DNA of 64,000 nucleotides from Macrostomum lignano (GCA_002269645.1 NIVC01000486.1:310001-374000), one strand, 5' to 3'; counted from the first letter of the stretch, positions 46,601 to 52,600 are shown. Notes: a model not told the origin generated them from the sequence alone. Numbers and translations are program-made.

Positions 46601-49600
46601 TCGCTGTAGACACCGATTTTCCCGCCGTCCGCGATGCCAAACTCTACAATCCACCACGAGGCTTCTCAGGTGGAGTCGTCGCCGGACGAGCGGCCTTCTT
46701 TGCCTGCACAGCGGCCGGCTCGTGCAATGCTCCGCGAGGTCGACGGCCGGCATTTCTCTTTCGAGTCGTGGAGCTCTCGTCCGTAGACATTGCGGCTGTA
46801 GTTCTGCAAAATGAGGGGAGTGTTCCCATTCAGCCTCCCTCTAGATGGAGGCTCTAGCGGATCTGGAGCTTGATCTCCATAATGTGCCACACATCTATGC
46901 ACAGGAAACTGTTGATATCGTACTATAGTGTGGGTCCACTTAATGGGCTTATTTCCAAAAAAGACTTCTACGTACCTCATTCATCAATCTGCAGTAGCAA
47001 CAGTTATATTTTACATAGAGGGGAGAGAGGTGAGAGAGACCGGGAGAGAGAGGTGGAAGAAAAATAAACAGGAATAAAGCTGAGACGGGAAGTAGACAGG
47101 CAGAGAATCTAGCTTGTCTATTCAAAGACTGCGTTTCTTTGCGTCATCAGGGGTACGCCTGATGTCTTCCCTAGTCTGGGTTCGACCCTGAATGCAAGTT
47201 GCTAAGGAGAAGGACACAGATAGTACATTTGGAAATAAAGCGATTCTGCCTACCCCTATGAAATGTGCAATCAAAGCATTGTTCCGGCCTGTACACCTAC
47301 CAGTGCTTTGCATTTATATACGTGTGTGATGCTATATATGGTGGTACCTATATATATATCGGTATATATATACCATGTGATTCACGATCGTGGATCACAT
47401 TTGGGGCTGCAGAATTTCGTGTGAATTTCTCCCCTGCTGTACATGCAACAGGCTTTGCGGCAATGGGATAAGTATATATAGTAGACTAACGATGAAACGC
47501 TGTGTTCGTTATATAATTCGTTATATTTGTTCGTTATATTTGAAGTATTACTTACAGGTAGATGTAACAACTGGCTCGAAAATCACAACATATATATGTC
47601 TCGCCTGTGTCTGCATTTTCATCTGCTGGAACATCCGTGGGGCCTCCCGGAAGCCCTTTCCTTCCATTCCGTGCTTCCTACGCTTATTTCCTACGCCTAT
47701 CCTACTTCTGCTATATGGTAGAAAATATGTGTATAGAATTCTACGTTTCGAAACGTACTATATATGTGGTACACTGATGCTGCGCATGTTCCTGCAGATG
47801 AAAATTGCAGACACAGGTGAACAACACAAAAGATGGGATAGTAATTAAGGTGACACGCAAAAATGTGGGTATACAGACAGACAAATATTAAGGTTTGAAT
47901 TACTACTTACAGATAGACGTGAAAAACGAGCGAAAAGCGCAACGTAAAGCACGCAAAAAAGGTAAAAAGCACGCAATGGAGGGACAACGCTTCAGCTTCA
48001 ACCCATAGTCCTCAGTAGGACGATAAAACTGATTGAGGATGTAAGGCGAACTTGGCAGTTATCCAAAAAATATAATCTTGGTAAAGAACTGTGGCTTGAA
48101 ACATGTGATGAAAATGTATGAAAAATGACGTTGTAAGTGTAATTTACGAAATATTTGTCACGCTCCTTTGAAATGCATAGTACTGTTCCACCGAAAATAC
48201 GTGCCACGACTTACAGAGGTGTACCGTCACAAAAAATGCTACGGTAGACTCACGTCCTACAAGTACTGGCATGACGGGGTGTAAAGACAAATAACAGACA
48301 TAGAGAGGCATACAAAGTGTCATAAGCAAGGAGAAATGAGGTGCATAAAAACAGCTGTAAAATGGTGCACCGTGCCCTTGTAAACCCTTGTGCAATTTAA
48401 CGAATGAAATGTGCCACGGGAACTTGGGTAAAAAAATTTGGGCAAAAAATTGTGGCATTGGAACACACCGGGCCACATGACAGGAAGGGAAGGGGCAGTA
48501 AATAGCCCCAAACGCATATGCATATGTGCGCACATATGGCAAGGCCTGGCGCGGCATACCGTATAGCTATGCATAGATTGCTGGAATATTGTTGTAAATG
48601 CGTAATTATAAATACGTTGACGAGGTGTGGGAAATGCATTGAACACTGTGTGCAGCGTACATGGGAAGCAGGGAATTCCCTTCGAAACTAGTTTCGAAAG
48701 TAGCGCTATCTTACTTTGGCATGACACAGCTAAGCACAGTTTGCCAAAAGGAAATTAAAGTAGCTGAAATTCCAGCAGCTGCGGCCGGCGTGTTTCACGA
48801 CAGAGACAACTTCTTAGTCCGGCCCATATAGTGCGTCACAACCGCTGACGAAATGCAGCAGTGAATGTGACGAAAAGATTTACGTGTCCCCAAGAAATTT
48901 CGAGCCTGCATAAGCTTAAGCTGTCTTGTATGTCGGCCTTTTATTCGACGGCAACCCAGCCCGACAATGTCCATGATTACTATGCACGCACAGTGAGCAT
49001 GGACAGTCATGCATGTACATGTACATGACATGTCAATCAGTTATGTCACTCAGTCGCTCAGGTGAGCTAGTCATTCAGCATGGACACTGACTGACTCATT
49101 GATGACGAGTCGAGCTCGACTGCTGATCGGCGTGCCGCCATGGAAGCGGCTCCGGGATGGCGACGTGCAGGCGGAACGGCCGATCCTGGTTGGCCCCCTC
49201 CGTGGCGGCCCGCCACAGATCGACGTTGGTAACGGCCTCCTCCTCCCACGGCCTCAGCCACGACAGCCAGGGACAGCTATTCGCCAGCTGTGTCAGGACG
49301 CATACGGTCAGCCGGACGTCCTGCAGGGAGAGCCGGCGAAGGCCCCTGCCGACGGCACTGGTACACAGGACGACCACGCCGTCGTCGAGAGGTTGGGGCA
49401 CTGGGCGATGAACAGCTCGTGCAAGTCCGGAAGGCCCAGCTGGACAGGCCGCTCGCCACTTATAGCGGACCAGCCCTGCGTGGTGACCAGCCGGCAGTCG
49501 TCCAGGTGCAGGGTGTGCAGGCGAGGCAGCTGCGTCAGTAGACATTCCAGCAGCGCGTCTGTGCAGCAGATGTCGGACAGAGACACGTGGCTGAGTTCTG

Positions 49601-52600
49601 TGGAATGGGGAATTCCAATTTCCAGTGTTCAGCGACTGGTCCCCCAGCGCTATGGTTCGTTTACGGTACGGTAAGGCTCGTACTGACGGCCACGAATGAA
49701 ACTCACCCCTACAGCCAGTGACTGCATGCACGAAATCGTCACCCGTACAGCGAAGAAACTGGCCGGGCGCGACGGTCAGGAGCTGCAGGGCCGACGGCAT
49801 TGGCTGTCGGGCGTGGCCCGAAGCATGGTCGTGGAGGCGGGCTGGCGAGTCGAAATCCGCCAGGATGATGAGCTCCACCAGCTGCGGCTGACGGGCGGCC
49901 AGCAGGTACCCCTCAGCCCGGAGTCGGCGACACCGGAGCAGCGTCAAGCTCCGCAACCCCGGCCACGCCGCGAGAAGGAGCCGGAGGCCGCGGTCCGTCA
50001 GTTGGACGCAGTTCTCGAGGACGCATTTGCGCAGCTGGCTGCCGTTGCGGCCGACGGACCCTGACAGCTGCGCAGCGAGCTCGTCGCAAATGGTCGTGCC
50101 GCCGATGGTCAGCTCCTGCAGGCTGGGCAGACCGGCAGTGACAACCAGCAGTCCTGTGATATTGGTGAATTGTTGGAGTGAGTAGGAGAGGCATTTAGTA
50201 TTTTGCCCATAAGTACGAGTGGCATTTTGTAGGAGTCGCATTATGCGCAGGAGAAATAAAATCGCGTACAAATTGATCTCCTACACGATGGAACACATAC
50301 CAGCACTGGCGCCACAGTGATCGACTCTGACAAGGCCGCCCAAACAGCTGCGACATCTGTCCGACTGCAGGGCGTCGTCGACGGCCGAAAAGCCCTCGAA
50401 AGCCAGCCGCACCGACGAAAGCCGGCACAGCAGTCGGCGGAACAGCGGTTCGCAAGTGCAGAGATCCGCCAGGGCTCCGACATCGTCAAGCTCAATGTGA
50501 GCGAGGTGTGGACAGCCGTCTATAAGGGTCCTCAGCGCCTCGGCCGTCAGCATGCCTCGGCAGTCCAGGAGGCGGAGATGACGCAGACGGGGGCAGCCAC
50601 GGCCGGCGGCGACCAGCGGATTGACCGCTGACTGGGTGCAGTCAATCGCCGTCAGCAGCAGGCCCCGGAGGTTGGGGCAGTCCCTCAGCAGGAGCGACAA
50701 CTGCTCCATCGTCGCGTCTGTGGGTTGCGAAAGGAAGCCGAATTCGACTTCCCGCACCGAGGCCGCCAGCCTCTCCGTAACGCGAGTGAGAACGTCCGAG
50801 TGCGGGTCGGCCTCGAGTACTGCTGGGTCGAGTCGCAGTCGTGGCCACAGTAGGGTTGCATTGCCAACTCGTGCCAGCGACGGCTCACCCGTGCGCACCG
50901 CAGGAGGCTCTGTAAATCCAGCGAAGCGAAAATCCGCGTAATCAACTCCGCTGGCAGCGCGTCCATGGTGTAGGGCTGCAATGTTCGTAGGGATATTCGT
51001 TCATTACCGACGAGCGACAAATTTAGAGGCACACTTTGAAGCAGTGGCGTGTCTAGGGCGATACGGGGATATATCCCCCCCATTATAAGAAAATTTTGTA
51101 TAGCACACATTCTCCGCTAATCAGTAAATAATTTCACCTTTTATAAATTAGACAAATAAATTAAATTGTACAGGATTCATACTGGTGCCGTTCTGGTACA
51201 GCAAGTGGATAATTTCAGCCTAATCATGAGTTTAACTAATTAATCTGCCCTTTGGTACCACTAATCTATATTATCCTTTCTTTCCCGAAATAAACTTTCC
51301 AAAAATAGTTATTGTCGTGTTGTGTCGAAAATACAAAAAATCATATACAGTATTTATGTACCCTAATTTTAATATATTTCTATATAGATACAAAGCCTAA
51401 AACTGTAGAGAAACATTTTACTATGAAGAAACACAAATTTATTACTTTTGAGCAGCATGCTAAGTAACGTAAGCAGCGAATATACTATCAAGATGAATAT
51501 TGTCGACCTCCTTTTGGTCTTGTGGCTTTCGAAGTATAAGTACATTTGTACAAAATACAATTCCAGTTACTAAGCTATTTTGCATGAACTAAAATGAATA
51601 GTATTTTAAGCATATTCTAAAAAGCCTATATGCGCTCTAATTACTGTAAGGAACGATCTGCTCAGAATATGGGATTAGCTCATTCCTAAAACAACACAAT
51701 TGGAAATAAAAGCATATATAACGATATTTACCAGATACAACAAAACAACTTTAAGCTGCGATAGAAGAATCCGCTCGTCTAATATTTCTGCGTTTAATAA
51801 ATGCCTGCAAAAAAAGCTATTTGCAGTGCAAGTAAACAAGTTCAAATTCTATTTTATACAGAACATGATAAATCCTACGAGTAAATTAAAGCTTAACATA
51901 ATTTTCATGTCAAAATAGCATAAGTCTAATTTTTACTACACTAGTATATTTTTTAATGCTGTCTTGCTGCATAGTAAGATAGTGAGAAGTCATTATGGCC
52001 TAATGAGTTAGTAGTGAACACCAGAGCATGCAAATAAAATAAAAAAGAATGCAGATGGAGAAGTCGTTAGAGAAAAAGGACATTTTCTTCTCTGAGTATA
52101 ATAATAAATGTGTAAATGATTGCATTCAGCTAAAGCATCAGGCATAAAAAGAGTTAATAAATAATGATGACCATGCAAAAGAGAAGCATACACACACATG
52201 CGCGCGCGCAGTTGAGCCACACTGCGGCAATACACCGTGAAGACAGAAGGCAGGTTAACACATTTTCTTCTAATAAAGAGGGACGAAAACAAGGCAGACA
52301 AAAATATTAGTAGAATAAAGGTAGATCCCACGTCAAGAAAAAGGGAAAATAACACAGATCATACCAAACTCTGACACAAAGGATTGGATTTATCCTTCCC
52401 TTTTCCTTTTTGCTTTCGTGATGCTGCTATATAGCTATAGTAAAATTGAAAGCATATACATATTGTTAGGTTTACATTCTAGAATACATACAGGCAAACA
52501 ACAGAATGATCTAAAAATCCACAAACATATGTATGTCTATTTTAAATAAGACTTTATTTATAAGACGGCTATAGACCGGCTATGGCGGAGTGAGACCTCT

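Follow-up and report, generated by a model that had tools for sequence, protein, structure and literature searches.

An intron-bearing F-box/leucine-rich-repeat gene carried by a three-gene DNA transposon of the flatworm Macrostomum lignano

Transposon-encoded factors that act against host control are, to our knowledge, few, comprising VANC in plants and TET/JBP in fungi, with essentially none from animal cut-and-paste elements. Viruses and bacterial pathogens profit from hijacking the host ubiquitin system, to which FBXL proteins are connected through an F-box that binds Skp1 and through leucine-rich repeats (LRRs), whose bound substrates are presented to Cul1-Rbx1. Here, we describe a 17,045-bp cut-and-paste DNA transposon of Macrostomum lignano that carries a complete F-box/LRR gene between its transposase and a third gene, open reading frame 2 (ORF2). 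The element lies in a 64,000-nt stretch of the genome assembly (GCA_002269645.1, NIVC01000486.1:310001-374000), hereafter the window, and coordinates are those of the window unless another locus is named. With moderate confidence, we read the F-box/LRR gene as a long-conserved, integral accessory gene of one sublineage of a macrostomid transposon family, encoding a putative adaptor to host Skp1 that would act for the element. An earlier note on this DNA had drawn attention to the gene; what it observed was partly confirmed, and how it interpreted the observation was partly supported. Full-text literature searches returned no description of a transposon-encoded F-box/LRR gene.

In Arabidopsis, VANDAL (Mutator-like) elements encode VANC, a DNA-binding protein with demonstrated anti-silencing activity (PMC5735166, PMC10398659). 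Like VANDAL, the M. lignano element has an extra gene beside the transposase and element-specific short non-coding motifs that evolve fast among relatives; VANC acts in trans for its element, as the F-box/LRR protein presumably does, but the two belong to unrelated protein classes, and an effect of the latter on silencing would be a prediction from sequence. Fungal DNA transposons of several groups (KDZ, EnSpm, Plavaka and others) encode a captured TET/JBP dioxygenase, which is thought to help them escape silencing (PMC12730594). They too are cut-and-paste elements with a conserved captured gene of host type, in part from the same broad transposase group, whereas the captured product in M. lignano is a ubiquitin-ligase adaptor rather than a DNA-modifying enzyme, the host is an animal, and the gene is known from one sublineage and two elements. 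The polerovirus protein P0 is F-box-like, binds SKP1 and targets ARGONAUTE1 (PMC6593998), and the transposon would likewise be a genetic parasite that redirects the ubiquitin system of its host by means of an F-box adaptor of its own; P0, however, has a minimal F-box-like motif and no LRRs, in contrast to the full host-type F-box/LRR gene with introns found here. Ubiquitin-pathway domains are also known to travel between host genes and transposable elements, with Helitron-like elements carrying FBA_3, OTU, UCH and Ulp1 domains (PMC11417382) and, in the reverse direction, Caenorhabditis F-box genes having captured the helix-turn-helix domain of a transposase (PMC12062965). The M. lignano gene belongs with such traffic but differs from Helitron or Pack-type capture in being a complete, separate, intron-bearing gene that has held a fixed slot in an autonomous DDE-type element while the elements diverged deeply. 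En/Spm (CACTA) elements encode a transposase together with a second protein that binds subterminal repeats. The element described here resembles En/Spm in its large size, its terminal inverted repeats, its inverted subterminal arrays of a short motif, the presence of more than one gene on one strand, and in that the distant relatives of its transposase touch Pfam Transposase_21; it is unlike En/Spm in its CCCG... termini, which are not CACTA, in a transposase without a Pfam match and in the extra F-box/LRR gene.

The F-box/LRR gene runs on the minus strand from a start ATG at 50966 to a TGA stop at 49098-49096 (50966-49096). Exon 1 (50301-50966) holds the ATG, the F-box (residues 2-47) and the first LRRs, exon 2 (49707-50153) the central LRRs, and exon 3 (49096-49597) the last LRRs and a C-terminal tail. 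The two introns, at 50300-50154 (147 nt, GTATGT...CACAG) and 49706-49598 (109 nt, GTGAGT...CACAG), are of the GT-AG type and in phase 1, exactly as the earlier note had read them. An acceptor-like TTGCAG lies 9 nt upstream of the ATG, and an AATAAA at 48940-48945 on the same strand, about 150 nt 3' of the stop, is by its sequence a possible polyadenylation signal. The exons have a GC content of 65-68%, compared with 41-53% in the introns and 34-46% in the flanks.

The identity of the product is clear from several comparisons. Its F-box matches Pfam PF12937 at 48.2 bits (cut-off 24.3, E 8.9e-13), over a span that includes a frameshift site discussed below, and PF00646 at 35 bits (cut-off 20.5); the F-box of a second transposon copy, at locus L002, scores 44.1 bits. 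A sequence search of the PDB gave FBXL2 (6o60_C, E 5.5e-19), Skp2 and FBXL17 as the best solved relatives. An AlphaFold2 model built from nine sequences (pLDDT 75, pTM 0.70; predicted local distance difference test and predicted template-modelling score) shows a three-helix F-box followed by about 17 strand/helix repeats, and the top foldseek matches of this model are FBXL2-SKP1, TIR1, FBXL17 and COI1, all of them SKP1-bound F-box/LRR receptors, with Dia2 also among the structural matches. The feature is a genuine, complete FBXL-type F-box/LRR gene of host type, and both the canonical F-box and the multiple Cys-containing LRRs that had been proposed for it were upheld by these searches. As in animal FBXL2, FBXL7, FBXL17 and Skp2, substrate receptors of Skp1-Cul1-F-box (SCF) ubiquitin ligases, the F-box is followed by Cys-containing LRRs; unlike the animal genes, this one is encoded by a transposon, is 27-31% identical to FBXL7, falls in a flatworm-specific clade, and combines its approximately 17 repeats with a transposon-specific C-terminal tail. 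Of the earlier description, the position, domains and introns stood, while two 1-nt frameshifts in the coding sequence as assembled had been overlooked.

The transposon around the gene spans 42130-59174 and contains three genes, each of them on the minus strand. Its ends are 24-nt terminal inverted repeats, CCCGGTTAAAAAAAAGACGGTCGC at 42130-42153 on the plus strand and CCCGGTTAAAAAAATAACGGTCGC at 59151-59174 on the minus strand; the window contains exactly two occurrences of the 24-nt terminus CCCGGTTAAAAAAA[A/T][G/A]ACGGTCGC, inverted relative to each other, against 0.00 expected by chance. Next to the termini are subterminal arrays of the motif CGACCG, arranged on the left as CGACCG(T) in 23/46-nt tandem units (42160-42925, plus strand) and on the right as 25 copies inverted relative to the left array (58560-59135, minus strand). 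The motif is counted 48 times on the plus strand in 42130-43000, whereas the 15.5-kb interior contains none on the plus strand and two on the minus strand. Both ends are flanked by TTT (42127-42129 and 59175-59177), which may be the target-site duplication of the element. The F-box/LRR gene is placed, as had been noted, between the transposase gene (53905-57478) and its neighbour ORF2 (45470-46690, the 5' end being approximate), in the same orientation as both, and its location inside a transposon is borne out by the inverted termini and arrays that enclose it and by a homologue in a second element. An Rfam scan of the window gave no match.

That second element was reached through the transposase, whose best relative is the M. 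lignano protein P0009 at locus L002, with 32-65% (about 45%) identity over all four segments. On one strand of L002, the transposase (10001-13589) is followed by an unannotated F-box/LRR homologue (~15260-17370) and by a homologue of ORF2 (19106-20374), the same gene order as in the window element. The L002 termini, CCCGATTGAAAATC at ~9053 and, inverted, at ~22906, enclose inverted subterminal arrays with a motif of their own, GTCGGCAC, different from CGACCG. Protein identity between the two elements is about 45% for the transposase, 38% for the F-box/LRR protein and 30% for ORF2, and at the DNA level only three short transposase-coding stretches can be aligned, at 65-70% identity. The flanks are unrelated, with an XPG-like gene and a satellite at the window element and tandem repeats and a gag-like ORF at L002, and the possibility that the two are orthologous loci was rejected on this ground. 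The gag-like ORF (L002 22907-23589, minus strand) resembles that of a retrotransposon, runs up to the right terminus of the L002 element and ends there. Beyond the opposite terminus no continuation of the ORF was found; the arrangement is consistent with insertion into another repeat.

The earlier note had allowed that the gene might be present in this copy only, or might belong to a separate nested insertion with its own ends. The L002 homologue is colinear and in the same slot and orientation, and no direct or inverted repeats bracketing the F-box/LRR gene were found. It could still be that the gene does not belong to a mobile element, being instead part of a domesticated, immobile host locus conserved by descent, having arrived as a separate nested insertion, or being a host gene caught between two elements. 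The window shows a single copy, and target-site duplications at L002 and at a third locus, L004, are not convincing, which would fit such an account; set against this, inverted termini and subterminal arrays bound both the window and the L002 blocks (L004 having inverted termini and its own repeated motif), their flanks are unrelated, related transposases are multicopy in M. lignano (the set Mlig001703 g3, g4, g9, g12 and g17), nothing brackets the F-box/LRR gene, and its slot and orientation agree in both elements. We consider an immobile origin of this kind highly improbable.

Comparison of the two transposon copies indicates long-term purifying selection on the F-box/LRR gene, which concerns its deep history and not the recent history of the window copy. 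Over 481 codons, the two proteins are colinear and 37.8% identical, whereas shuffled sequences average 8.3% and reach at most 12.3%; codon positions 1 and 2 are 57% identical and position 3 is 39% identical. Four-fold sites at identical residues agree in 41.7% of cases against 34.4% expected from composition. Synonymous sites are near saturation, too close to it for a classical dN/dS, and this near-saturation, together with the retained protein, the colinearity and the open frames, argues for purifying selection over a long period. A dN/dS near 1, which the earlier note had associated with a passive passenger, is thus not what is seen over the long term, the protein having remained 38% identical while synonymous sites approached saturation. 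Both copies also share a C-terminal tail of about 40 residues, W.E....N.[DE].W...A...N..R...L....PE, that is not found in the host paralogues. The window and L002 elements, themselves diverged, have the same extra gene in the same place under purifying selection, and its presence in the same slot of a very distant relative argues that the accessory gene is old and selected and does not ride along by chance. Pack-type capture of a gene fragment was rejected, since the gene is complete (start, stop, introns and AATAAA), resides in an element with a full transposase, and is conserved in a second, distant element.

The closest proteins to the window F-box/LRR protein are from M. lignano, namely P0001/P0002 (40% identity) and P0003, followed by vertebrate FBXL7 at about 28% (27-31%). 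In a phylogeny, the four flatworm sequences (window, L002 copy, P0001 and P0003) form a clade with 100% support against FBXL7, but the monophyly of the transposon copies within it is not firm. The window introns match introns 2 and 3 of P0001 in codon position and phase (x|LL... and GCR|xL[ST]H...), and the L002 copy has the same two introns, one of them with a GC donor, plus an extra one. Introns common to the window, L002 and P0001 argue that the gene moved as genomic DNA and not by retroposition, and the DNA-level capture proposed by the earlier note is upheld on this evidence. P0001 itself adjoins a SecY gene; within 10 kb of it there is neither a transposase nor an ORF2, and neither a terminal motif nor arrays. 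A single acquisition by the transposon is the simplest history suggested by synteny and the shared tail, although P0001 may conversely have been domesticated from a transposon copy. The suggestion that transposition is amplifying an F-box family found no support, the close relatives found being limited to P0001/P0002, P0003 and the L002 copy; P0002 alone came back from a profile search built on the four flatworm F-box/LRR sequences, in which LRR-rich candidates swamped the word filter.

P0001 (L001 10001-13928, M. lignano NIVC01002547.1) carries at its N-terminus a linker-histone H1/H5 (H15) domain fused to the F-box/LRR part. Such a fusion is an unusual architecture and, from its sequence, suggests that the flatworm F-box clade may work on chromatin. 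A search of the window for an upstream linker-histone exon like that of P0001 gave no match.

As assembled, the spliced F-box/LRR coding sequence of the window is 1615 nt long (1615 mod 3 = 1) and has no continuous open frame, literal translation from the ATG giving a product of 93 residues. The first frameshift, inside the F-box, is one base short after WHELAMQP in a CCC run at ~50853-50858; an M. lignano paralogue reads WHELVMQPLVW here (WHELVMQPLVWRRL), and the window continues as ...LLWPRL in the next frame. The second, in a late LRR, is one base short near 49386-49400 (QCPNLS | DDGVVVLC). Homologues align over both sites in shifted frames. These lesions raise the alternative that the gene is a decaying passenger, once useful or tolerated and now, in this copy and perhaps across the family, a pseudogene riding along while the transposase does the work, in which case any decay would have to be very recent, given that synonymous sites are near saturation and the protein is 38% identical. 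No in-frame stop occurs in approximately 1,040 F-box/LRR codons over both copies, and all six lesions, of which the window element has four and the L002 F-box/LRR gene has two, are 1-nt deletions, with no nonsense changes. The window ORF2 requires the same type of correction, of one nucleotide each near 46650 and near 46430. Single-base deletions are the typical residual error of long-read assemblies. Such garbling is seen between P0001 and P0002, the same gene in two M. lignano assemblies, which differ in a block of about 45 residues that looks frameshifted, a caution that proteins predicted from Macrostomum long-read assemblies are garbled by single-base indels. Judged from these sequences, the window frameshifts are more likely assembly errors than real lesions, although this particular copy may be dead, a point that the earlier note had missed along with the frameshifts.

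Several observations weigh against reading the gene as a conserved accessory gene at work for the element, and some of them favour a passenger. The F-box/LRR gene is interrupted in both copies seen, by two 1-nt frameshifts each, while both transposases are free of frameshifts over about 3 kb each; if real, the frameshifts imply that the gene may be dispensable. The L002 copy carries no annotation in the transcript-based M. lignano annotation even though both of its neighbours are annotated, a hint that it is expressed weakly or not at all. Some relatives, such as the one at L004, lack the gene and look complete. The F-box-bearing elements compared number two (window and L002), and a matching target-site duplication was not found at L002 or L004, TTT being present in the window only. 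Inside the flatworm clade, the transposon copies group together with 52% support and the window copy with P0001 with 41%, so that inferences on how many transfers occurred, and in which direction, depend on synteny and the shared tail. Finally, the mechanism proposed below is argued from what is known of the protein family. Taking both sides together, we regard a decaying passenger as possible but doubtful.

The conserved accessory gene appears to mark one sublineage of a wider family, as four relatives lack it: at L003 (M. lignano) and at L004-L006 (metagenomes), ORF2 follows directly after the transposase with no F-box gene in between. Because the termini of the window, L002 and L004 match, a family terminal signature can be given as 5'-CCCGNTKRAAAA, with subterminal motifs that are specific to each element (CGACCG in the window, GTCGGCAC in L002 and TCCGG in L004). 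Terminal inverted repeats are present in the window, L002 and L004, and inverted subterminal arrays in the window and L002. The ends are not of the CACTA or CAC type, reading CCCGGTTAAAAA in the window, CCCGATTGAAAA in L002 and CCCGCTGAAAAA in L004, the L004 terminus being CCCGCTGAAAAAATCGTCCGG. L004 (marine metagenome, 97-10043) is intronless and looks complete at 10 kb, with TCCGG as a repeated terminal motif. This is apparently an undescribed family of three-gene or two-gene DNA transposons with CCCG termini, present in M. lignano and in marine and Joint Genome Institute (JGI) metagenome contigs. No relatives came out of two scans of metagenome contigs, in which the transposase profile and the F-box protein of the window served as queries.

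The transposase gene (53905-57478, minus strand) consists of exons at ~57478-55557, 55374-55198, 54920-54603 and 54537-53905. Its product and those of its five closest relatives have no Pfam match, and a word-indexed protein search with the transposase core found no relatives, so that an exhaustive HMMER search was needed; this yielded 772 relatives, of which M. lignano proteins and three from metagenomes, at 35-44% identity, are the closest. The distant relatives P0019, P0022, P0024 and P0026 match the window transposase at E 1e-15 to 1e-18 and in turn match Transposase_21, DUF1258 and Plavaka at E 4e-7 to 5e-5, below the gathering scores. A link to the CACTA/Mirage/Plavaka group, transitive through these distant sequences, is probable. 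The label of transposase given by the earlier note therefore stands on the 772 HMMER relatives, with no direct Pfam match behind it. An alignment of transposases (A2) contains invariant D/E columns, which are candidates for the DDE catalytic triad. The N-terminal part carries serine/acidic tandem repeats (ASDAE, 56844-57326, units of 15/27 nt), and the L002 transposase likewise has N-terminal serine/acidic low-complexity tandem repeats (10265-10690, 60-nt units). Putative intron 2 of the window transposase contains two adjacent, near-perfect hairpins of ~66 and 83 nt (54960-55135, minus strand), with a combined folding energy of -91 kcal/mol (z = -11.9 against shuffles); from their sequence, they could be a foldback or miniature inverted-repeat transposable element (MITE) insert, or a small-RNA precursor.

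The third gene, ORF2 (45470-46690, minus strand), is homologous to the ORF2 of L002, L003 and L004. In the window, a barrel-like segment (WWIVEFG...VRLVRGP) in the N-terminal part of its product is combined with a CxxC motif, a long coiled coil and, towards the C-terminus, an alpha-helical domain; across the family, the N-terminal segment follows the pattern YWV/WWIV...G...V.L..GP, and in L004 the gene (7509-9342) is split in two ORFs that are probably exons of one gene. Ala/Pro-rich tandem repeats follow both ORF2 genes, at 45060-45219 in the window and at 20933-21266 in L002. The earlier note had called this neighbour a BEN gene. Pfam (PF10523, E up to 10) gives no match to BEN for the ORF2 of the window, L002 or L004, and only a sub-threshold one for that of L003 (16.2 bits, cut-off 23.2); searching the PDB with an ORF2 profile found nothing, and a single-sequence AlphaFold2 model (pLDDT 49) was too poor for fold assignment. 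The BEN label is accordingly unconfirmed.

How an accessory gene of this kind might serve its element can be sketched from the F-box/LRR family. On the simplest history, an FBXL gene was inserted as genomic DNA, introns included, between transposase and ORF2 in the ancestor that the window and L002 elements share, and it has since been kept under purifying selection while the rest diverged beyond alignability at the DNA level. Its protein would dock on host Skp1 via the canonical F-box, its solenoid of about 17 LRRs would present a substrate to the SCF ubiquitin ligase, and the product would act in trans for the benefit of the element. The most likely substrate would be a host restriction factor, for example a silencing or chromatin factor, and the second most likely the element's own DNA-bound proteins; both ideas had been raised by the earlier note, and both remain conjecture. 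Speculatively, the three co-oriented genes, with the acceptor upstream of the F-box ATG, could form one transcription unit; in M. lignano, 39% of genes are trans-spliced to a spliced leader and ~7% of transcription units are polycistronic (PMC5730564).

The second kind of substrate corresponds to a self-regulatory role, in which the adaptor would target the element's transposase or ORF2 product, either stripping it from subterminal sites after transposition or limiting transposase dosage. Dozens of subterminal motif copies, presumably bound by an element protein, would offer such sites; SCF-type F-box/LRR receptors that remove DNA-bound complexes exist, Dia2 being among the structural matches; and the gene is located between the two genes whose products would be the targets. 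Yet L003-L006 have the same two core genes and manage without an F-box gene, L004 has repeated terminal motifs despite lacking it, and the substrate is purely conjectural. We consider self-regulation unlikely.

The first kind of substrate leads to a more specific proposal, which we put forward only tentatively: the captured SCF receptor of this animal transposon lineage would be a counter-defence weapon, marking a host restriction factor of the PIWI pathway or of heterochromatin, in neoblasts or germline, for ubiquitin-dependent removal. M. lignano offers transgenesis, RNA interference and a studied PIWI-interacting RNA (piRNA)/PIWI biology, and its SKP1, which spermatogenesis requires, is enriched in proliferating cells (PMC4604429, PMC5730564, PMC9740662, PMC11075559). 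The cells in which SKP1 is enriched are those where heritable transposition matters, and these tools together with the SKP1 biology make the adaptor idea directly testable in this animal.

In the surroundings of the element, a host gene for an XPG/ERCC5-like nuclease with an XPG_I domain lies to the left (38460-41822, plus strand), its last exon running into a tandem repeat of 28 nt whose end is ~90 bp short of the left terminus. Two further host genes, judged by eye, are a single-exon ORF resembling a seven-transmembrane receptor (28557-29816, minus strand) and a Cys-rich ORF (24341-25282, plus strand). A 39-nt satellite (AGATTAGCAATCCATTCTATTCCTGCATCCTTGTGGGCT) forms arrays at 59658-60648 and 32880-34531, in direct orientation and 97-99% identical, the former beginning ~480 nt from the right end of the element.

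Taken together, the results define a three-gene transposon family that has CCCG termini, has apparently not been described before and has relatives in marine metagenomes. If true, the counter-defence adaptor would do for a transposon what F-box suppressors such as polerovirus P0 do for viruses. That an F-box/LRR gene has been kept through synonymous saturation suggests that hijacking the host ubiquitin system can pay for a transposon.

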